Below are positions 3,001 to 51,812 of a DNA stretch of 64,000 nucleotides, in pieces. The position numbers were made by a program, and so were the translations under genes. Under the pieces are notes generated by a model. That model saw only the letters and a program-made list of their open reading frames with translations. It searched no databases and had not been told where the DNA came from. Location: the sequence record PV745554.1, one strand, 5' to 3'. Within the stretch, counting starts at the first letter, position 1; each line of letters begins with the position of its first letter.

Positions 3001-5141
3001 CCAGCATGCAGTCCCAGCTTCAGATCATGCGCGAGAGCGCACGCCTGAACAACAGCCAGCGCGGCGTCTACGAGGACTACCGCAACATCCTGGGCGAACT
3101 GCTCAACAAGCAGGGCGCCTCGCTGAAGGAACTGCTCGACTCGGCTGACGAGCAGACCAAGCAGCTTGCCCAGTCGTTCGTCAAGGCCAAGCAGGACTTC
3201 GAGAACCCGCCGGGCTTCCAGAAGTGGGCTGACGCCCTGGAGCCGCTGGACAAGCGCCTCCAGGACATCAAGTCGCAGTTCATGGATGACCTGGGCGGCG
3301 GCATCACCGACGCGCTGCTCGGCGAAGACGTCGACTGGCGTGAGATGCTGCACAACACCTTCAAGAAGCAGCTTCGCGCCCAGGTCGACGAAGGGCTCAA
3401 GAACGTCACCTACTGGCTGACCGGTCAGGACCCCAACGCCCAGGCCGCCGCCAAGACGCCGGAAGCCCAGGCCCTGGTCTCGGCCGCCGACGTCCAGAAG
3501 CAGGCTGGCGACACCCTCCAGCAGGCCGCCAACAGCCTGCTCCAGGTCGCTCAAGGCGGAACGCCCGGCGCGCCGGGCATGATGCCGGGCGCTCCGGGAA
3601 CCTTGCCCAACAGCGCGACCTCGGCCGTCCAGCCGGGCATGACCCCGCTGCAAGGCCTCGCCGCCCAGGGCATCAACAGCGCCGTCCAGGGCGTCGGTTC
3701 GCTCATCGGCGGCGATCCCACCCAGCACACCGGCGCGCGCAGCTTCGGACAACGCGTGGGCGGCATCCTGTCGAGCGTCGGCAGCATGTTCGGCTTCGGC
3801 GGCGGGCGCCCCACGGCGATCGCGCCGGGCGGCCTGGGCGCGATCGGCGAGACCAAGACCTCGGGTGGCCTGTTTGGCGCCCTGGCGGCCATGAACGGCG
3901 TCACGGGCTTCCAGAAGACCTCGACCATGGTCGGGGGCACGTCCTCGGCCGGCGGCTCGACCGCGATCTCCGACGCCCTGACCATGGGCGGTGATCTGTC
4001 GCGCAACGCCGGCATGACCAACGCCATGCAGATCGGTAGCGCCACCATCTCGATCGGCAGCGCCACGATCAACGGCGGCGGCATGGGCGGCGGGGGTGGT
4101 GGAGCCCCCGGTGGCGCGCCGGGCGCTGGCGGCATGGGGGCCATGGGTGGCGGCGGCCTGGGTGGTCTGCTCGGCAACCTCAACACCAACACCGTGGGCG
4201 TCGGCGACAACATGCTGAGCCCGTTCACCATGGACGGCTCGGGTGGTCCCGGCTTCATGCCGGCTGGCTCGGGCCTGATGAACCTGTTTGGTGGTGGGGG
4301 CGGCGGCTTCGGTGGTGGCGCTGACCTCTCGGGCCTGACCAACAACGCCGTCGGCCTGCCCGACATGCTGAGCGCGTTCACCATGGACGGCTCGGGCGGT
4401 CCGGGCTTCCAGGCGGCGGGCTCGGCCCTGCAAGGCCTCAACATCACCCCGTTTGGCGGTGGCGGCGGGCTGGCCGGAATGTTCTCGTCGTTCGGCCCGA
4501 TGCTGCAAGGCGCCATGTCGTTCGCCGGTCCGCTGATCGGCGCGCTGATGACGGGCAAGAAGGGCGGCCCCAAGCCGCCGCCGACCTATCGCACGCCCAA
4601 CGGCGTCTTCGGTCAGGCCAGCCAGAACACCGTCACCGGCCGCCTGCTCGGTCCGCGCAAGAACGTCTTCGGCGAGATCGCCAACCTCGCCATGCAGTTC
4701 TTCACCGGCGGCATGGGCGGCGGCGGTCCGATGAACATGATGAGCATGTTCGGCGGTGGCGGCGGTCCGATGAGCATGATGGGCTTCAAGGAGGGTGGTC
4801 TGACCGGCGCGCCGGTCAACAGCTACGCCGTCTCCTCGCTCGGCTCGATGTTCGCCAACGCCCCGCACTACGCCGAGGGCACGCAGAACACCAAGCTGGC
4901 CAACGGCGGCATGCCGGCCATCGTCCATCCGGACGAAGCCGTGATCCCGCTGTCGCGTGGCCGGAACATCCCGGTCGAACTGAACGGCAACGGCGGCGGT
5001 CATTCGACCACGGTCGTCTCGCCGATCACCGTCTACGCCAACGACGTCGACAGCTTCCGCCCGGCCCAGAACCAGATCGCCCGCAAGCAGAACCGCACCC
5101 TGCGCCGCGCGGCGCTCCGGAACGCCCAGGGCGTCGGCTAA
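3..5141 (+). CDS. Tail tape measure protein (5'-truncated) with internal peptidoglycan-hydrolase-like domain and Gly/Met-rich C-terminal region
   Basis: Frame open from nt 3; >1700 aa Ala/Gly-rich helical protein directly upstream of baseplate genes; internal LSWCAAFVN...GHVGF...LGGNQ (TIGR02594-like); C-terminal FKEGG...HYAEG...AIVHPDEAVIPL typical of TMP ends. Confidence 0.9.
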   Translation: MTGQQKSVADLFDEMRKGTLQSAPFLKAWADEVSRMFAPLLPEAEKRPDFQLNKVKTAFSLWKKEVGQSQFIGALTTQFKRLSDMLIVVKGDHYVLTDRGKKLADSFGKGLAQAVNILGNALAWLADNMDKVVSVIKVIGALAIGNEFAKWGSQVAKFADNMLGVKKAIEEVSAAESTAQAKRAVVNKSGAVNTAASLATDRMAMATNRSRDAVMGGTFVGSAAAPAVRQAPAFSQLSYLTGAPTEAARGRATFGQRQPFTGNSTFDARPAARGNMLGGLMGAASAGAATAATTAFSGLRKVINLLPGVALTAAVALAIFGNSMTKLNDKAVSYNNIAAGALGTAGDQVGMGLTGLFNGIRGLLGAQQKAAGTGDWLVDISASLIVFGKTIFTLASTLGKILGTMMSNIIIPWIDLGQKLSSGDLKGAAAASGEILLGQFGKESRKRWGDLGKELGQDWGKALDYAGTRKSIVDGALKSAAGDTAATQGANAAQKMTEAALAQMKAADDQALAAADLKDATANFKKDLAPLNFNDLFKRAQALADGTFQRTAAASKPGSALMAPSPAQTQANAAAVKATIASMGDRVYATAGQHMGQTAAKDGASLQAYFKANGVTIDPKKLSWCAAFVNAVLAQNGLSGTGSLAASSFKDYGSEVSRADAKKGDIVVLKPQDKLKRTTGHVGFLDGFNSDGSVRLLGGNQGGGVKVSNFKADQVVSFRRTGTGGASGADPSFLGGAIKDGQGEEGGSRYERRMNAFKALGTITGQSSPAADALSDYQGNLEKLRDIIVSEEKLMTDVGSDGQSFFNKTNLEALAATQKKWNRSIVEALNPIAKEARLLSEGNDVLELRAKGLSQEADWQERLTNMRNDGLNVDLMQDEAKWTQYLNELKKQGLEIDVKALMMKPDELRYQQGRQEALQAELDLTKALNDAKQAQIARTGSSYDRTLSGLIAGKGKEGESLTQTQDRLAGSVGPNGRNALEALQETAGVMESSRLADAKASMQSQLQIMRESARLNNSQRGVYEDYRNILGELLNKQGASLKELLDSADEQTKQLAQSFVKAKQDFENPPGFQKWADALEPLDKRLQDIKSQFMDDLGGGITDALLGEDVDWREMLHNTFKKQLRAQVDEGLKNVTYWLTGQDPNAQAAAKTPEAQALVSAADVQKQAGDTLQQAANSLLQVAQGGTPGAPGMMPGAPGTLPNSATSAVQPGMTPLQGLAAQGINSAVQGVGSLIGGDPTQHTGARSFGQRVGGILSSVGSMFGFGGGRPTAIAPGGLGAIGETKTSGGLFGALAAMNGVTGFQKTSTMVGGTSSAGGSTAISDALTMGGDLSRNAGMTNAMQIGSATISIGSATINGGGMGGGGGGAPGGAPGAGGMGAMGGGGLGGLLGNLNTNTVGVGDNMLSPFTMDGSGGPGFMPAGSGLMNLFGGGGGGFGGGADLSGLTNNAVGLPDMLSAFTMDGSGGPGFQAAGSALQGLNITPFGGGGGLAGMFSSFGPMLQGAMSFAGPLIGALMTGKKGGPKPPPTYRTPNGVFGQASQNTVTGRLLGPRKNVFGEIANLAMQFFTGGMGGGGPMNMMSMFGGGGGPMSMMGFKEGGLTGAPVNSYAVSSLGSMFANAPHYAEGTQNTKLANGGMPAIVHPDEAVIPLSRGRNIPVELNGNGGGHSTTVVSPITVYANDVDSFRPAQNQIARKQNRTLRRAALRNAQGVG

Positions 5142-39327: not shown

Positions 39328-40018
39328 AGAGAAGCTCCGGTTTGGCGCTGACGGGCTTGGACCAGTCCCAGACGAACCACGCGTAGGCGAAGCGCGGTGC
39401 GCCCTTGGTCCCCTCGATCCAGCGGGGGCGATGGCGAAGGGTGACCTTCGCGGCGAAGGCGGGGTGATCGAAGAGGTCGGCGCGCGAGCGCGCGGCGTCC
39501 CATTCGTGGCGGCAGAGGAAGGCGACGAAGCCCTTGTCGGCTTCCATCAGCTTCAGGGCATGACGGGCGGCGCGCTCGGCGTCCTTGCCGTAAGGCGGAT
39601 TGGAGATGATGGCGTCCGGGCGCGCCGGCAGCGGGGTGACCTTGCGCTCCTTGCCCTCGTCGTCGAGGACCACCGCCGGCCGGGCCTTCAGCGCGCCCAG
39701 GCGATCCAGGTCGTCCGGGGTGAGCTTGAAGAAGTCCTCGACCGCGTCCACGTCGAAGCCTTCGTAGCGACGGATGTCCGTGGAAAGGACCTCCTGCACG
39801 TAGGGCCGCAGCGGGTTGGCGATCGCGCCGTTGCCCGCGAAGGGCTCCCAGGCATAGAAGCCGGCGAACTCGTCGCCCATGGCCTCGATCAGCGCGTCGA
39901 ACGCGGGACGAGGCGTCGGATAGAAATCCAAGGGGTTCCTGGCATAGCCCGAGGCGCCCAGCATGGAGGGGTCTTTGCGACCGGCATCGGAGAGAGACAT
40001 GGCCAGGAGGGATGTCAT
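39317..40018 (-). CDS. Amino (likely N6-adenine) DNA methyltransferase
   Basis: DFYPTP, WEPFAGNG (motif I), ISNPPY (motif IV). Confidence 0.85.
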   Translation of the reverse strand: MTSLLAMSLSDAGRKDPSMLGASGYARNPLDFYPTPRPAFDALIEAMGDEFAGFYAWEPFAGNGAIANPLRPYVQEVLSTDIRRYEGFDVDAVEDFFKLTPDDLDRLGALKARPAVVLDDEGKERKVTPLPARPDAIISNPPYGKDAERAARHALKLMEADKGFVAFLCRHEWDAARSRADLFDHPAFAAKVTLRHRPRWIEGTKGAPRFAYAWFVWDWSKPVSAKPELLYAG

Positions 40019-40031
40019 GGTTAACGAAGGG

Positions 40032-40077
40032 TGTCAAGATTCACGACATTGACTGTCGTGACGCACCACGCTACACA
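40032..40077. promoter_or_regulatory. Divergent promoters: motif on - (40032-40048) and TTGACT-N17-TACACA on + (40049-40077)
   Basis: Back-to-back CACGACA/TGTCGTG half-sites; + promoter faces a non-coding region. Confidence 0.7.
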
Positions 40078-40083
40078 CCCTCG

Positions 40084-40767
40084 ACGAGGCGGTCTCCTGC
40101 TCCTAGCGCGCGCTCTCCAGCCTTTCCGAGGGCGATGCGCCGGACCTGCTGAGCAAGGGAATCCAGAGCGAGGCAGCGCTCTGCTCCCCAAAGAGTGGGC
40201 CAAGCGGTGCGGGCGGAAAGGCTCGGGGTCCGTGGCTCCATGCAATGCGCAGGAGAGACCGTGCTCCTTCTGACGCAGCGGGCGCCCGACGTTGCGGGTC
40301 GTGAGGCGAGGCCGGCCGAGATGATCAACGGCCTGGGGCGGGAGGGGCTTGACCTCTCCCGCATCCGCCTCTAGCGTCACCATCAATCAGGCGCAGCACT
40401 GCCTCACGATCGGACCATGTTCGGCTCCCGGTCCTGGAGCTTGGAAGCCTCACTCTGGAGCAGGACTGCCGCTGCGCCGGGGACGGTTTGGACGACGCAC
40501 CCGTCCATGAGGCGAACGCCGGCCAAGACATGGCACGAGGCGTGACGGGGACCAGAGGTCCCACTCCATTCGCCGCGCCGGCGGCAGCAAAGCTCATTGA
40601 GCGGATGGTGGCACGGGCGCGAGCCCGATTTTGAGAGCCAGCGGAGAGCCACCTTCCTCCCTGGCCCGGCGACGACGAAAGCTGGGTGGCTGTAACCGCT
40701 CGTCTGAGGGATGCGTCCCCAAGATCATCAAGACGCAAAAGGCCCCGATCTCGCGATCGGGGCCTTT
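40084..40767 (+). ncRNA. Candidate large (~680 nt) structured ncRNA
   Basis: Promoter, terminator, no credible ORF, many long-range helices including a crossing pair. Confidence 0.65.
40737..40767. terminator. Bidirectional intrinsic terminator
   Basis: AAAA-GGCCCCGATC-TCGC-GATCGGGGCC-TTT. Confidence 0.88.
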
Positions 40768-40774
40768 CAAATTC

Positions 40775-40863
40775 TGGAGCTACGGGAGGGACTCGAACCC
40801 TCATAGGTGTCGCCACCAGCAGAGATTTGCAGTCCCGCGCCTAACCTCTCGGACCACCGTAGC
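40775..40863 (-). tRNA. tRNA-Cys(GCA) with long variable arm, encoded CCA
   Basis: GCUACGG/CCGUAGC acceptor, U73, CU-GCA-AA loop, GGUG-GCGA-CACC arm, GAGGG-UUCGAGU-CCCUC. Confidence 0.9.
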
Positions 40864-41110
40864 AAAACGGGACTGACGCCCGAAGGCCCAGCCCCGTTCC
40901 CGACGACCCAAGGGAGTGCCGTAGCTGTCCCAAGGAGCACCGTGACGGCGTGGCAGGCGACTGAAGCCGTCAAGTCGAAGGGCTTCCGGCGCCGGTCACC
41001 CTAACCTCCGGGCTCTTGCGAGCGCGAGTGAGGTCCTCCTACGCCGATCCTTATAGCCGAGCCTTCACGCGTCCGCAACGAAAAATGTGTCGTGAGCGAT
41101 GACTTTTTCC

Positions 41111-41140
41111 TTGACACCTTCGATTAGGCTCTGGTAGAGA
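41111..41140 (+). promoter_or_regulatory. tmRNA operon promoter (TTGACA ... TAGAGA)
   Basis: -35 at 41111-41116; partial motif TGTCGTGAG just upstream. Confidence 0.6.
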
Positions 41141-41144
41141 ACAG

Positions 41145-41530
41145 GCATCGTTGTAATTCGGACAACGGAAACGGCGGCAAGACGGGGGTGCGATTCCCCC
41201 CGCCTCCACCACCACGAGCCCCTGGCGCTGGGAGTACGCGACTCCTGGGCAGGGAGTGTTACCCTGACGGACCATTGCTGGCCCGAGCCAAAGGTAGCCG
41301 GGGGTTCTTGATGCTGGGGGCGATCAGCTTCGATTGGCGCATGTGACTGGAAGACGCAACGGTGGGTGACCTCCAGGCCAGCTTGCTGGTGATCGGGTCG
41401 AAGCAACAGAAATGTCGCTGCAAATGACAACGCTCCGTTCGCGGTGCGTGAAGCCATCGCCGCCTAATAAGCGGTAGAGGCGTGTCCCGGCGGACGCGCG
41501 TGTCACAAAAAGGCCCTGCATCTACGGACC
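41145..41530 (+). ncRNA. ssrA: Two-piece (circularly permuted) tmRNA; tag ANDNAPFAVREAIAA; outer ends approximate
   Basis: Acceptor piece ending CGCCUCC-A-CCA (41201-41211) precedes 5' GGGGGCG (41316); G3.U70; tag ORF 41420-41470 ending TAA TAA. Confidence 0.92.
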
Positions 41531-41649
41531 GGGGCCAGTCCGCCACCCACCTTTCGCAGGCGGGGACCTAACTTCGGATGTCTGTCGGGCGATGGATGTT
41601 CACCTTGGGTCCCCGTCTTCGAAAGGTGGTCGAAAGACCGTCTAAAAGA

Positions 41650-41728
41650 CGCGGGGTAGAGGAGTCCGGTTGTCCTCGTCTGGCTCATAACCAGAAGATC
41701 AGGGGTTCAAATCCCCTTCCCGCTCCCA
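41650..41728 (+). tRNA. tRNA-Met(CAU), initiator-like
   Basis: C1 unpaired (C1/U72), UCUGG-CU-CAU-AA-CCAGA, AGGGG-UUCAAAU-CCCCU, CCA encoded. Confidence 0.88.
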
Positions 41729-41986
41729 GGACCTGAACGCCGAGGGACTCCCAAAGAACGACGGCGTGACACGCTCGGAGAGAACGAGCACTGCAATCCG
41801 GGCTATGAGACCGTGATGTAGCGGACGCCGAAGCGAGAGCAGGCGTGACACCTGGAGAGACGGGACCAGTTTTCCAGGCCGCATGCCCGGCGCACAAGAC
41901 CGCAGGCTTCGGCCGTAGGGCAGTGTCAGGGGATGAGGCTAGTCCCCGGCCCAAGGGCTAGGGCATGCGGCTTGGAAAGCTGGTTT

Positions 41987-42073
41987 GGTACGGTGGCTCG
42001 ACAGGTAAGGCATCGGCCTCATAAGCCGAGGGACTAGCTCCCGATCCTGGTTCAAATCCAGGTCGTACCTCCA
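41987..42073 (+). tRNA. tRNA(CAU) (Met or Ile2) with long variable arm and U73
   Basis: GGUACGG/UCGUACC, UCGGC-CU-CAU-AA-GCCGA, GGGA-CUAGC-UCCC arm, CCUGG-UUCAAAU-CCAGG, CCA. Confidence 0.88.
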
Positions 42074-42081
42074 AAAAGCAG

Positions 42082-42112
42082 GCGGCCGTCGGGGCGACCC
42101 GGCGGCCGTTTT
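42082..42112 (+). terminator. Terminator after RNA operon
   Basis: GCGGCCGTCGGG-GCGA-CCCGGCGGCCGT-TTT. Confidence 0.75.
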
Positions 42113-42114
42113 GC

Positions 42115-42131
42115 TGTCGTGAATCTTGACA
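42115..42131 (+). promoter_or_regulatory. Motif TGTCGTGAATCTTGACA
   Basis: Perfect copy upstream of cadherin-repeat gene. Confidence 0.75.
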
Positions 42132-42182
42132 CTCCGGGTTGAGCTAGGCATTATGCCGCTTGACTTTCAGGAGATTTGTGTC

Positions 42183-42530
42183 GTGGCTCGATCCACCCGT
42201 TCCGTCGCGTTGGCGCGCGTCGTCACGCCCGCGCAACTGAAGCGCGACATCCGTATTCGCCGTGCTGACGAACTGGCTGGGCCGAGCGGCCCCAATGGCG
42301 TGGTCCTGATCGGGATCACCAACGACCGCGTCATGGAAAACAGCGCACCCGGCACGCCCGTGGGCGACATCTTCACGATCCCGGCCGGCGCCGACATCGA
42401 ACTGGTCACCACCGGCGGCAATCGCTTCGACCTCGTCGGCTCGACCCTGGTCGTGGGCTCCACGCCCCTGGACCACGAGGCCACGCTGACGAACTGGCTG
42501 GGCCGAGCGGCCCCAATGGCGTGGTCCTGA
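42183..42530 (+). pseudogene. N-terminal fragment of the cadherin-repeat protein, truncated by the duplication frameshift
   Basis: AGGAG RBS before GTG 42183; frame broken at the repeat junction. Confidence 0.7.
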
Positions 42531-42707
42531 TCGGGATCACCAACGACCGCGTCATGGAAAACAGCGCACCCGGCACGCCCGTGGGCGACATCTTCACGAT
42601 CCCGGCCGGCGCCGACATCGAACTGGTCACCACCGGCGGCAATCGCTTCGACCTCGTCGGCTCGACCCTGGTCGTGGGCTCCACGCCCCTGGACCACGAG
42701 GCCACGC
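42264..42707 (+). repeat. Perfect 221-bp direct tandem duplication
   Basis: GCTGACGAACTGG... starts at 42264 and 42485; identity to 42707; 221 is not a multiple of 3. Confidence 0.95.
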
Positions 42708-45097
42708 CCGTCGTCAACGTCCTGGTCCATGCCGAGTACGCGGGATCGACGCTGGAGACCACGCTGCCGATCACGATCCTCAACGAGACCGAGGTGATCG
42801 GCGTCACCCTCTCGGCCAACACCGTGCTGGAGAACTCGGCCGCCGGCGTGACGATCGGGACCCTGACGCCCAACCCTGCGGACGCCACGCTCCAGGTCGT
42901 CGGCCCCTATGCCGGCTACTTCACGGTCGCGGCCGGCAACATCCTGAAGACCGGGTCGACGCCGACCGACTACGAGACCGCGCCCAACCTGACCGATCAC
43001 TCCTACCCGGTGACGATCGCCGCCACCCGCCAGGGTGAGACGGCCAATTTCACCATCCCGGTCTTCGTGCTGAACCAAGTCGAGATCACCAACATCACGC
43101 TCTCGGCCAACCACATCGCCGAGGGCTCGGGCAGCGGGACGGTGGTGGGCGGCCTGACCTCCACGCCGTCGGGCGCGACCTTCTCGCTGGTCGACAACGC
43201 CGGCTCGCGCTTCGCCCTGGCCGGCAACAACGTCGTCGCCGGCAGCGTCGCCACCAACTACGACACCGCCACCCAGCACGACATCACCGTGCGCGGCACG
43301 ATCGGCAACGAGAGCCTCAACAAGACCTTCACGATCCTGGTCGACAACGTCAACTCGATCAGCGACATCACCCTGACGGGCGCGTCGGTCAACGAGAACA
43401 CCGCCCCCGGCGTCACCGTCGGGACCTTCGCGACCGTGCCGCCCGGCCTGCCGCTGACCCTCACCGACACCGCCGGCAACCGGTTCGCCTTGTCGGGCAA
43501 CACCCTCCAGACGGGCGCAACGGCGACCAACTACGAGGTTGCCCAGAGCCATCAGGTCACCGCCCAGGCGACGTTTGGCAGCGACACCCTGTCGAAGAAC
43601 TTCACGATCAACGTGGTCGACATCGACGAGATCAACGACATCACGCTCTCGGGCAACACGGTGACCGAGAACACGGCCGCCGGCGTCACCGTCGGGACCC
43701 TGGCGTCGGTCCCCACCGGGGCGACCTTCTCGATCATCTCGCAGTCCCCGGCGGGCTCCTATTTCGTCATCAACGGCAACGCGCTCCAGACGGGGGCGAC
43801 GCCGACGGACTACGAGAACGCGATCTCCCACACCGTCAACATCCGAGGCACGCGCCAGAGCGAGACCTACGATGAGGCGTTCACGATCAACGTGACCAAC
43901 ATCACCGAGATCAGCAGCGTCTCGCTCGACAACCTGTCGATCAACGAGAACTCGCCGCAGGGTACGACCGTCGGTAACTTGACGTCGTCGCCGGCCGGGG
44001 CCAGCTTCTCGCTCACCGACAATGCGGGCGGGCGGTTCCAGATCAGCGGCGGCGTGCTTCAGGCCGGATCGGTGGCGACCAACTACGAGGCCGCGACCAG
44101 CCATTCGGTCACGGTGCGCGGCACGCGCCTGGGCGAGACCAAGGATCAGCAGTTCACGATCTCCGTCAACGATCTCGTCGAACTGAGCACCATCAGCCTC
44201 TCGGGCTCGTCGATCGACGAGAACTCGGGACCGGGGACTGGCGTCGGAACGCTCTCCTCGTCGCCGGCCGGCGCGAGCTTCAGCCTCACCAACAGCGCGG
44301 GCAACCGTTTTGCGCTGTCGGGCAACACGATTGTCGCCGGTTCGGTCGCCACCGACTACGAAACCGCGACCAGCCACCAGATCACCGTCCAAGGCACGCG
44401 CCTGGGCGAGACCAAGAGCCAAAACTTCACGATCAGCGTCAACGACGTGAACGAAGCCCCGCCCGCGCCTGATCTGGACAGCTTCGGCCTGTCGGGCTCG
44501 TCGATCGACGAGAACTCGGGAGCGGGCACCTTTGTGGGCACCTTCTCCTCGTCGCCGTCGGGCGCCAGCTATGTCCTGACCAACAGCGCGGGCGGCCGGT
44601 TCGCGATCTCTGGTTCCTCCCTGGTCGCTGGCTCGACGCCGACGGACTACGAGACCGCGACCAGCCATTCGATCTCGGTCCAGGCGACGCGCGGCGCGAC
44701 GACGCTCTCCGACAGCTTCACGATCACCGTCAACAACTTGGCCGAAGGCGGTGGCGGAAGCCCGACCCTGACCCCTGGGGTGAGCAACGGCAGCTTGACG
44801 GTGTTCGCGTCCAATCCTGGGGAGCAGGCGGTCTCGGGTTACGTGACTGTTTCGATCAGCCAAGGCACCGGGCCTTATTCGTTCGATTGGGAGCAGGTCA
44901 GCGGCTATGCCAACATGTACGTGGCCTACGGCACCGTGAACGGCAAGCCCAACGATTCTGGCTACTTCTACCTGGACCAGGGCGATCGTCCGTCCGACCG
45001 CACCACCATCTGGCGCTGTAAGGTCACCGACTCCGTCGGCAACTACGGGTACACGAACAACGTCACGATCCGCCTCGTCCAGTCCAGCCCGACCTAA
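42521..45097 (+). CDS. Cadherin-like repeat protein (8 repeats plus C-terminal domain); ~897 aa from 42183 if one repeat copy is removed
   Basis: Repeats of I-x-L-S-x-x-x-(V/I)-x-EN..G..VG..(T)DYE..H..FTI.V.D.xE. Confidence 0.85.
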   Translation: MVLIGITNDRVMENSAPGTPVGDIFTIPAGADIELVTTGGNRFDLVGSTLVVGSTPLDHEATPVVNVLVHAEYAGSTLETTLPITILNETEVIGVTLSANTVLENSAAGVTIGTLTPNPADATLQVVGPYAGYFTVAAGNILKTGSTPTDYETAPNLTDHSYPVTIAATRQGETANFTIPVFVLNQVEITNITLSANHIAEGSGSGTVVGGLTSTPSGATFSLVDNAGSRFALAGNNVVAGSVATNYDTATQHDITVRGTIGNESLNKTFTILVDNVNSISDITLTGASVNENTAPGVTVGTFATVPPGLPLTLTDTAGNRFALSGNTLQTGATATNYEVAQSHQVTAQATFGSDTLSKNFTINVVDIDEINDITLSGNTVTENTAAGVTVGTLASVPTGATFSIISQSPAGSYFVINGNALQTGATPTDYENAISHTVNIRGTRQSETYDEAFTINVTNITEISSVSLDNLSINENSPQGTTVGNLTSSPAGASFSLTDNAGGRFQISGGVLQAGSVATNYEAATSHSVTVRGTRLGETKDQQFTISVNDLVELSTISLSGSSIDENSGPGTGVGTLSSSPAGASFSLTNSAGNRFALSGNTIVAGSVATDYETATSHQITVQGTRLGETKSQNFTISVNDVNEAPPAPDLDSFGLSGSSIDENSGAGTFVGTFSSSPSGASYVLTNSAGGRFAISGSSLVAGSTPTDYETATSHSISVQATRGATTLSDSFTITVNNLAEGGGGSPTLTPGVSNGSLTVFASNPGEQAVSGYVTVSISQGTGPYSFDWEQVSGYANMYVAYGTVNGKPNDSGYFYLDQGDRPSDRTTIWRCKVTDSVGNYGYTNNVTIRLVQSSPT

Positions 45098-50189: not shown

Positions 50190-51812
50190 TTACTTGTTGG
50201 CGAACGCCGCGACGTAGGCCTTGGCGTAGGCTTCCTTGTAGAGCGGGCCGACGTCGTCGTTGTTCTCGTCTTCGAGGTCGGTGAAGTTCGAGTAGTGCTC
50301 GCCCTTCTCGGCGTCGAGGTCGAACGTCTCGGCGTACTCGCCCTCCAGGCGCCCGTCGCGGTCGCCCGCCAGCTTGGCCCAGGCCGCGTAGTGGTGGACG
50401 AGGACCTCCTCGAACGCTTCCTCATAGAGGTACGAGTAGGTGCCCACGCCCTTGTCGGCGCTGGCGCTGTTGTCGAGCGCCGATTCAGCCACCACGTCCA
50501 GGCGCTCGCCTTCGGGGCCTTCGCCCTCGACGAGGTCGACCAGGGCCTGGAGGCGCACGCCTTCGTCGGTCTGGCTCATCGCCTGGGCGATCAGCTTCTC
50601 GGCGTCCTCGCGGCCCCAGGACTTGGCCATGGTCGTGGCCAGATCGTGGTCGACGGCGGCAAAGCCGTTGGCGTCGTAGGCGGGGGTCTCGTCGGTCGAG
50701 GCGGTCTCTTCGACCTTCTCGTCCGAGGCGTCGTCAGTGGCGGCGGCCGAGAAGCCGACGCCATAGCCCTTGACATAGCCCTCCGAGTACGCCTGCCGGG
50801 CCGAGTCGGGGCCGTCGGTGAGTTCGCCCGGCAGATCGAAAGACGCGTCGTACTCGTAGCCGTTGTCCTGGTCGGCCGCACCCGCCTTCAGGCCAGCGTC
50901 GTGGCCGATCTTGGCCCAGTCGGTCGCCTCGGCTTCGACCACCGCTTCGGGGGCCTCGGTGGTGATCACGCCGTCGGCGGCCGTGGCGTCGGTCTCGATC
51001 TCGGGATCGACCTGGGCCTGGGCGTCAGCCTGGGCGGCCTTCTCCTCGGCGTAGCGGCGCTCGACGGCGGCGGTGAAGTAGTTGACCGCGTCGGCCTCGG
51101 GGATTTCGCCCAGGACCTTCATCTCGCAGCAGCGCAGCTTGGTGAGGTTGTAGTCGGTCGGGATCGCCGTGACGTCCTTGGGGTTGATCTCGACGATGAT
51201 GATCTTGCCCCGGCCGCCGTGGAACGAGCGCAGGTAGTCGAACGAGCAGGCGTGCAGGCCGCGCGAACAGGTCTGGTTGCGGTTCGGGTCACAGAGGTCG
51301 CGATCCATCGAGACCGTGCTGCCGATCTTGTACTCGACGGTGTGTGAGTGCAGGTCGAAGTAGTCCTCGCCCACGCGCTTGAAGGCATGGAACATGCCGT
51401 CCGGCGTCAGCGGGTTGCGACCCTTCTCCAGGAAGGCGTAGAGATCGGCGGCGATCGACTTGTCGGGGTTCTGGTCGACATTGGCGATGAAGTTGGTCAG
51501 CGGCTCCATGTCGAAGCCTTCCGCCAGCACGCGCTTGAAGGTGCCGGCCGCCACGTAGTCGACGACCTTGCCGTCCAGGCGCAGGCGGTCGCGATCGTCC
51601 AGGATGACGCGGCCGAACGAGTGGGCCGCCACATAGGCCGCCACGTCGGCGATCAGCCGGATTTCGTCGATGTCCTGCGGGACCTTCTTGACGGCCTCTT
51701 CCAGCTTCTTGCCCTGCGACGAGCCGCGAGGGAAGGAGCGGTAGCGCCCGTCCAGGGTGATCGAGATCGCGTCGACGGTGATCGTCACGGCGACCTTCGC
51801 TTGGGTAGTCAT
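50190..51812 (-). CDS. rIIB: rIIB-like protein with acidic C-terminal extension
   Basis: LYAFLE..PLTPDG.F.AFK.V..D..D.HS, CSRGLH, VTAIP.DY..KLRCC. Confidence 0.85.
   Translation of the reverse strand: MTTQAKVAVTITVDAISITLDGRYRSFPRGSSQGKKLEEAVKKVPQDIDEIRLIADVAAYVAAHSFGRVILDDRDRLRLDGKVVDYVAAGTFKRVLAEGFDMEPLTNFIANVDQNPDKSIAADLYAFLEKGRNPLTPDGMFHAFKRVGEDYFDLHSHTVEYKIGSTVSMDRDLCDPNRNQTCSRGLHACSFDYLRSFHGGRGKIIIVEINPKDVTAIPTDYNLTKLRCCEMKVLGEIPEADAVNYFTAAVERRYAEEKAAQADAQAQVDPEIETDATAADGVITTEAPEAVVEAEATDWAKIGHDAGLKAGAADQDNGYEYDASFDLPGELTDGPDSARQAYSEGYVKGYGVGFSAAATDDASDEKVEETASTDETPAYDANGFAAVDHDLATTMAKSWGREDAEKLIAQAMSQTDEGVRLQALVDLVEGEGPEGERLDVVAESALDNSASADKGVGTYSYLYEEAFEEVLVHHYAAWAKLAGDRDGRLEGEYAETFDLDAEKGEHYSNFTDLEDENNDDVGPLYKEAYAKAYVAAFANK

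Follow-up and report, generated by a model that had tools for sequence, protein, structure and literature searches.

The tRNA-Cys gene of a phiCbK-like Caulobacter phage is built on a class II body, combining the anticodon GCA and the discriminator U73 with a long variable arm. tRNA-Cys is held to be a class I tRNA, and long variable arms are regarded as a feature of Ser, Leu, bacterial Tyr and Sec tRNAs only (PMC7609411, PMC4810241). The gene itself is known, since it is annotated as tRNA-Cys in the GenBank records of BL64, CcrRogue, phiCbK and others; its class II body is what is new within the literature searched, where, at incomplete coverage, we found no description of a 7/5 long-arm tRNA-Cys in phages. 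We consider this RNA to be probably a true acceptor of cysteine, built on a class II scaffold, which the host cysteinyl-tRNA synthetase (CysRS) would charge.

The gene, its fold and its conservation

The window, that is the whole stretch of 64,000 nucleotides from record PV745554.1 that was analysed, is part of a phiCbK-like Caulobacter phage. Its positions 40000-43000 are 100% identical to BL64 and 99.9% identical to CcrRogue. The gene, its parts and the two hairpins beside it are as follows:

40775-40863, minus strand: tRNA-Cys(GCA), 89 nt, class II body, 7/5 acceptor/T branch (ARAGORN, Rfam, covariation, GenBank annotation)
40828-40830, minus strand: anticodon GCA, tRNA positions 34-36 (sequence; invariant across 8 orthologues)
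40806-40817, minus strand: variable-arm hairpin GGUG-GCGA-CACC, 4 bp, GNRA loop (sequence, MFE fold, relatives)
40778 and 40775-40777, minus strand: discriminator U73 and encoded CCA, respectively (sequence; invariant in orthologues)
40737-40768, minus strand: strong hairpin and U run directly 3' of the tRNA-Cys, probably its intrinsic terminator as judged from the predicted fold (-27.1 kcal/mol, z -6.0)
40864-40900, minus strand: very stable hairpin ending in UUUU and abutting the tRNA-Cys 5' end, which could be a terminator, an attenuator or a processing site (fold -24.8 kcal/mol, z -4.4)

ARAGORN called a tRNA-Cys (gca) at exactly the minus-strand interval 40775-40863. Rfam placed the gene among the tRNAs (RF00005) with 35.8 bits, above the gathering score of 29, handling its variable region as a 15-nt insert. 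Direct reading gave an acceptor stem of 7 bp, a T stem of 5 bp, the anticodon loop CUGCAAA and a D arm of class II type. The variable region comprises 17-18 nt, with 2-3 unpaired nt 5' of the hairpin and 3 nt between hairpin and T stem; a variable region of at least 10 nt with a stem-loop places the tRNA in class II. The preliminary description of this DNA had proposed Cys identity elements (GCA, U73) on a class II body with a variable region of about 18 nt. ARAGORN, Rfam, direct reading and covariation all bear this out, and the proposed GGUG-GCGA-CACC hairpin is recovered in the MFE fold and kept in relatives.

Orthologues of the tRNA-Cys were found in 35 phage records at identities of 74-100%, ranging from the phiCbK and Rogue types over CcrColossus and CcrPW up to jumbo Brevundimonas phages. 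In an alignment of eight orthologues every one of the 160 cloverleaf cells was paired (100%); 7 pairs had changes in both partners, and covariation supported all four stems. Slid-partner controls on the same sequences gave 39-54% pairing. Complete pairing of the D stem requires that a variable base at position 11 is bulged from a 3-bp stem, and the value of 100% also needs an extra U to be bulged from the anticodon stem of the Rogue/phiCbK type. This U lies in the 3' strand (as a bulge, or in a C27.U43 mismatch) and is absent from the tRNA-Cys of Colossus and of the Brevundimonas phages (Kabachok among them), which adopt a clean cloverleaf by energy alone. The variable hairpin reads GGUG-GNRA-CACC across relatives or, in distant orthologues, GGC-GAAA-GCC with 3 bp, the GNRA loop being kept throughout. 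The anticodon loop, U73 and CCA did not vary across the eight orthologues. The orthologues in 35 phage records together with the covariation put the tRNA-Cys beyond chance.

Covariation also ruled out three other ways of reading the molecule. An 8/4 fold is incompatible with the 7 acceptor and 5 T pairs, all of which are supported, and the base adjoining the acceptor 3' strand belongs to the T stem and is no possible partner for base 8. Readings of the extra segment as an intron and of the variable arm as a chance hairpin were rejected on the same grounds.

A leader peptide with Cys codons upstream of the gene is not supported, the only frames there being a 9-codon ORF (0 Cys) and a TTG frame of 68 codons, which has a single Cys and reads into the tRNA-Cys gene. 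The hairpin at 40864-40900 is located in the divergent spacer between the tRNA-Cys and a tmRNA. Pfam searches with three neighbour proteins, including those annotated as 'nucleotidyltransferase' and 'DNA methylase', returned no family at E values up to 0.01.

Long-arm tRNAs in phages and in cellular genomes

The tRNA-Cys is no singular oddity, as which it had initially been taken. The BL64-type phage carries at least four long-arm tRNAs with class I anticodons, the tRNA-Cys being one, and the type occurs in many unrelated phages. Further RNAs of interest in the phage family are:

41149-41467, plus strand: permuted (two-piece) tmRNA (Rfam, 88.5 bits)
41650-41728, plus strand: tRNA-Met(cat), fMet in some records (ARAGORN)
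41987-42073, plus strand: tRNA(CAU), 87 nt, class II body, U73, CCA (ARAGORN Met(cat); Rfam, 47.1 bits)
BL64 record 50928-51109 (L009:2429-2515 and L009:2521-2610): tRNA-Lys(CUU), 87 nt, and tRNA-Lys(UUU), 90 nt (ARAGORN)
BL64, L009:2971-3041 and 3047-3117: 71-nt 'His(gtg)' and 'Ala(tgc)' calls (ARAGORN), absent from the BL64 annotation
CcrColossus, L011:241-326 and L011:10055-10143: long-arm tRNA-Trp(CCA) and tRNA-Asn(GUU), both G73
Kabachok, L012:422-505: long-arm tRNA-Asn(GUU), G73

Like the tRNA-Cys, the tRNA(CAU) at 41987-42073 has a variable hairpin of 4 bp and a 3-bp D stem with a bulge, and across seven orthologues it was 100% paired with 6 compensatory pairs; it may be an elongator Met, an Ile2 or something else. 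The other tRNA(CAU), at 41650-41728, has an initiator-like C1 x U72 mismatch but an anticodon stem devoid of the three G-C pairs, and seems to have C73. Both Lys tRNAs lie outside the window in the main tRNA cluster of BL64 and carry long variable hairpins, with U73 in place of the usual A73. The second of the pair, Lys(UUU), is without annotation in the BL64 record, and its D arm is one base off that of the host tRNA-Tyr. The D arm of the long-arm Asn tRNAs in Colossus and Kabachok resembles that of phage Leu tRNAs. In the 71-nt calls the anticodon stands at position 29-30 and the D arms are tiny; they are possibly akin to the irregular His/Ser tRNAs of alphaproteobacterial phages (Mukai et al.). 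The hypothetical CDS BL64_127c (41065-41406, minus strand) overlies the tmRNA and is probably no real gene. The phiCbK genome paper lists the tRNAs without remarking on their structure and reports no other RNA (PMC3556154), so that the tmRNA was missed there in 2012.

IMG/VR was scanned with a pattern of CTGCAAA, a gap of 22-30 nt and a T loop, which returned more than 116 stretches, 80 loci being listed. Among these 80 listed matches ARAGORN identified a long (83-93 nt) tRNA-Cys(gca) in at least 49 loci. U73 was present in 47 of these 49 (44 of 46 distinct sequences), the 7-bp acceptor stem was intact in nearly all, and 13 of 14 long-arm Cys tRNAs checked passed the Rfam tRNA threshold with 43-64 bits. 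The loci span a GC content of 26-65%, and many are on contigs of 100-540 kb. Long-arm tRNA-Cys is thus a type spread through many very different phages. At least eight of the listed loci contain a class I and a long-arm tRNA-Cys together, both with U73, which hints that the two body types are not simply redundant. Two of the long-arm Cys tRNAs from IMG/VR were compared by BLAST with 50,697 phage records, a search of low sensitivity with such short queries, and gave no useful match. The public sequencing runs found for the phage were only metagenomes from wastewater, soil and freshwater, at small shares, with contigs that contain relatives of the phage.

Because the CTGCAAA-gap scan favours long arms, a second sample of 80 IMG/VR loci was drawn with a class I tRNA-Trp pattern. 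Among its 827 tRNAs were 24 class I and a single long-arm tRNA-Cys (1/25), so the long-arm molecule is a recurrent minority form of phage tRNA-Cys. In these loci (L184-L263) variable regions of at least 11 nt were seen on Ile(UAU) (6/11), and long arms also on Asn (4/36), Met (6/67) and Lys-UUU (2/29).

For cellular genomes a stricter pattern that required U73-CCA was run on 185,579 species assemblies. It matched 43 stretches, and in 17 of these ARAGORN recognised a long-arm tRNA-Cys. Nearly all of the 17 lie within dense arrays, where tRNA genes number 7-28 in 8 kb, carried by Burkholderiales isolates and various MAGs. The arrays, together with three tRNA-like ends from Caulobacteraceae, are:

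L134, L136, L143, L151, L157, L158, L160, L168: dense arrays with a long-arm tRNA-Cys (Burkholderiales and other assemblies)
L149:3820-3879, L182:287-334, L183:265-386: tRNA-like 3' ends with T arm, acceptor strand and CCA but no complete cloverleaf (Caulobacteraceae)

Some dense cellular arrays also hold long-arm Thr(UGU) and Ile(UAU). All patterns demand C32 and a GGTTCGANTCC T loop, and the census in addition an encoded CCA, so the counts of long-arm tRNA-Cys are lower bounds.

The preliminary description would have been overturned if long-arm tRNA-Cys were common in Alphaproteobacteria, which the genomes examined do not show. None of the 17 tRNA-Cys in the census came from this class, and in 61 Caulobacteraceae genomes all tRNA-Cys-like matches had class I spacing except for three longer ones. 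ARAGORN found no tRNA at any of these three, which were rejected as class II tRNA-Cys; they are the tRNA-like 3' ends listed above and possibly represent attachment-site remnants. Those in L182 and L183 gave weak, sub-threshold tmRNA-like Rfam matches. In agreement with the initial statement that bacterial tRNA-Cys normally has a short loop, the tRNA-Cys genes of the host family are class I, with 74 nt, U73 and a variable loop of 4 nt. The host tRNA-Tyr has 85-86 nt and A73.

Amino acid identity, function and origin

U73 and GCA are the major determinants of CysRS (PMC9976931), and the phage tRNA-Cys has U73, G34, C35 and A36, invariant in eight orthologues. The minor bacterial determinants G2-C71 and C3-G70, which host and E. 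coli tRNA-Cys possess, are replaced by C2-G71 and U3-A70; the tRNA-Cys of the Brevundimonas phages has G2-C71 and G3-C70. We propose that a short transcription unit of its own yields the tRNA, which would be matured to its encoded CCA end, charged by the host CysRS, as this enzyme mainly reads the GCA and U73 that are both present, and would then read UGC/UGU on the ribosome. Host enzymes must do the charging, because searches of four phages of the family turned up no CysRS gene, and the BL64-type phage has no class IIa synthetase. The latter is also absent from phiCbK and Colossus; Kabachok has one candidate:

ON529852.1, 114480-115001, minus strand: open frame of 448 aa with a match to the core of class IIa aminoacyl-tRNA synthetases (PF00587, 128.9 bits)

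Comparison with the other tRNAs of the listed IMG/VR loci supports a cysteine identity. A73 was found in 21 of 22 Tyr and 36 of 37 Leu tRNAs and G73 in 35 of 46 Ser tRNAs, and other long-armed oddities carry the discriminator that their anticodon predicts (G73 in 7/9 Asn and 3/3 Trp). The discriminator follows the anticodon on long-arm bodies, a pattern expected if these tRNAs are selected for anticodon-matched charging. With U73 and C35 the phage tRNA-Cys lacks the A73 and U35 of tRNA-Tyr as well as the A73 of tRNA-Leu. The D-stem bulge and, in the BL64-type phage, the extra U in the anticodon stem count against the cysteine acceptor, as they could impair its function. The deviating acceptor pairs 2:71 and 3:70 and the low Rfam score of the gene weigh in the same direction.

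Evasion of host anticodon nucleases was among the initial suggestions for this tRNA. The arm may be a harmless relic of anticodon switching or bring a benefit such as protection from tRNA-cutting defences. That the arm is an adaptation against tRNA nucleases or toxins of the host or of rivals, leaving the phage copy intact when class I tRNA-Cys is cut, strikes us as unlikely. Resistance of phage tRNAs to PARIS AriB and to retron effectors is on record (PMC11464382, PMC11555353), AriB has been modelled as gripping the anticodon stem and the D loop (PMC12409363), and the coexistence of both Cys body types in some phages would fit. However, known escape from such nucleases comes from point substitutions, located in the D loop or the anticodon stem-loop, and involves no extra arm, and tRNA-Cys is not on the list of AriB targets (PMC12409363). 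The identities on that list (PMC12409363), Lys(UUU), Thr(UGU) and Asn(GUU), all three also occur with long arms in phages, but this overlap could equally stem from the single-base neighbourhood of their anticodons to those of Ser, Leu and Tyr. A broader version is somewhat more doubtful still: phages might repeatedly have transferred identities of class I (Cys, Lys, Asn, Thr-UGU, Met, Ile-UAU) to a class II scaffold whose arm blocks immune nucleases gripping the anticodon stem and core. Synthetases that mainly read anticodon and N73 would be undisturbed, and the extra arm would, if this were true, be a general and so far undescribed counter-defence device.

Mischarging by SerRS had been suggested at the outset. 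This enzyme is anticodon-blind and reads the long arm, so it might serylate the phage tRNA wholly or beside Cys, in which case Cys codons would be partly translated as Ser. For allo-tRNAs a long arm with G73 or U73 is taken as serine identity (PMC5389517), and U73 occurs in 11 of 46 real phage Ser tRNAs among the IMG/VR matches listed and in Ser(CGA) of phiCbK and Kabachok, for which reasons U73 alone does not argue against serylation. By plain identity, moreover, the nearest non-Cys neighbour is a Ser tRNA for 28 of the 46 long-arm Cys tRNAs among these matches. The geometry of the arm points the other way. Phage Ser arms have 5-7 bp with 1 unpaired nt on either side, whereas phage Tyr and long-arm Cys tRNAs of the listed matches share a modal arm of 3-4 bp with 1 nt 5' and 3 nt 3', which the host tRNA-Tyr has too; this Tyr-type arm argues against serylation. 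A tRNA-Ser is expected to combine G73 (or a tolerated U73) with G2-C71, a long stem and a single unpaired 3' base, a combination from which the phage tRNA-Cys departs, having C-G at 2:71. U73 is near-universal on long-arm GCA tRNAs yet a minority among Ser, and GCA and U73 are conserved over very distant phages, as would be expected under selection for recognition by CysRS. Proteome-wide Cys-to-Ser replacement would also be expected to strike catalytic and metal-binding cysteines, for instance those of the phage ribonucleotide reductase. Serylation is improbable on this evidence.

Slightly less probable still is that the gene is in decay or serves outside translation, as a tRNA-like decoy, processing signal or recombination site that merely keeps a cloverleaf: the gene does have the lowest Rfam score among the tRNAs of the BL64-type phage, bulges in two stems and a location away from the main tRNA cluster, adjoining the tmRNA, but compensatory changes keep all stems paired from Caulobacter to Brevundimonas phages, the anticodon loop, U73 and CCA are invariant, and distant orthologues (Colossus, Kabachok) are free of the anticodon-stem bulge.

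A cysteine acceptor of this shape would most simply have arisen from a class II ancestor by later changes of anticodon and discriminator. GUA and GCU are each one base away from GCA. The body is a class II scaffold whose variable hairpin of 3-4 bp, followed by three unpaired bases, has the geometry of bacterial tRNA-Tyr, and the tRNA probably belongs to a loose lineage of class II bodies with class I anticodons (Cys, Lys, Met, Asn, Thr, Trp) and matching discriminators. The phiCbK-like family has normal Leu tRNAs and, in some members, Ser tRNAs; no tRNA-Tyr was found in it. Identities of the phage tRNA-Cys to host Tyr, Ser and Cys tRNAs and to phage Ser, Leu, Lys and Met tRNAs are flat (0.54-0.73), with the phage's own long-arm Met and Lys on top, so that the parent tRNA cannot be named. 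The anticodon switch considered from the beginning therefore fits the data as far as the class II scaffold and the changed anticodon and discriminator are concerned, without pointing to a parent. A quick tree of 183 long-arm phage tRNAs from the listed IMG/VR matches, built on few columns with the anticodon masked, gave 14 label changes for Cys and 15 for Ser (46 sequences each) against a shuffled mean of 41, the clustering of Cys being inflated by the choice of this set through shared loop motifs. One supported split had 42 of the 46 Cys tRNAs on the same side as long-arm Lys, Asn and Thr, and most canonical Ser, Leu and Tyr tRNAs on the other.

If the cysteine acceptor is real, CysRS tolerates a long variable arm, and by extension the Lys, Met, Asn and Trp enzymes may do so too. 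The long-arm tRNAs would then offer a natural series for following moves of tRNA identity between scaffolds, and phiCbK-like phages on Caulobacter CB15 a cultured model for the role of tRNA body shape in phage-host tRNA conflict. For annotation it matters that tools name such genes by their anticodon, leaving the body unflagged.

Comparison with known systems

The canonical tRNA-Cys of Caulobacteraceae and the phage molecule have in common GCA, U73, the 7/5 branch, an encoded CCA and a D arm of the G13.A22 type with G15. They differ in that the phage tRNA has 89 nt instead of 74, a hairpin-bearing variable region of 17-18 nt instead of the 4-nt loop, and a bulged D stem. With bacterial tRNA-Tyr it shares a 3-4 bp hairpin flanked by 1 nt on the 5' and 3 nt on the 3' side, a class II D arm and an anticodon that differs in one base (GUA versus GCA). 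In contrast, A73 and U35, the major TyrRS determinants, are both missing, and its identity to host tRNA-Tyr (0.60-0.68) is no better than to other tRNAs.

Among unusual tRNAs, SelC* tRNA-Cys comes close in that it unites a long variable arm, U73 and GCA and has been proposed to accept cysteine (PMC5389517). However, SelC* has an 8/4 branch with a bulge and longer stems, and is found in anaerobic bacteria with a dedicated SelB*/CysRS* (PMC5389517), whereas the phage tRNA is 7/5 and comes without a phage CysRS. Allo-tRNAs similarly have a long arm, anticodons other than Ser, Leu or Tyr, often U73 or G73, and phage and mobile contexts (PMC5389517). They are set apart by 8/4 or 9/3 branches and a D arm like that of tRNA-Sec, and are thought to be serylated or to go unused in translation (PMC5389517). 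Nematode nev-tRNAs likewise place class I anticodons on class II bodies, but keep leucine identity and are charged with Leu (PMC3333845), while the discriminator of the phage tRNA-Cys has been switched to match its anticodon. The Lys, Thr and Asn tRNAs with which T5 meets PARIS are, like the tRNA-Cys, phage copies with an altered body and a kept identity (PMC11464382, PMC12409363). These PARIS-resistant tRNAs are class I with point substitutions near the cleavage site, have no extra arm and do not include Cys (PMC11464382, PMC12409363), in contrast to the long-arm molecule described here.
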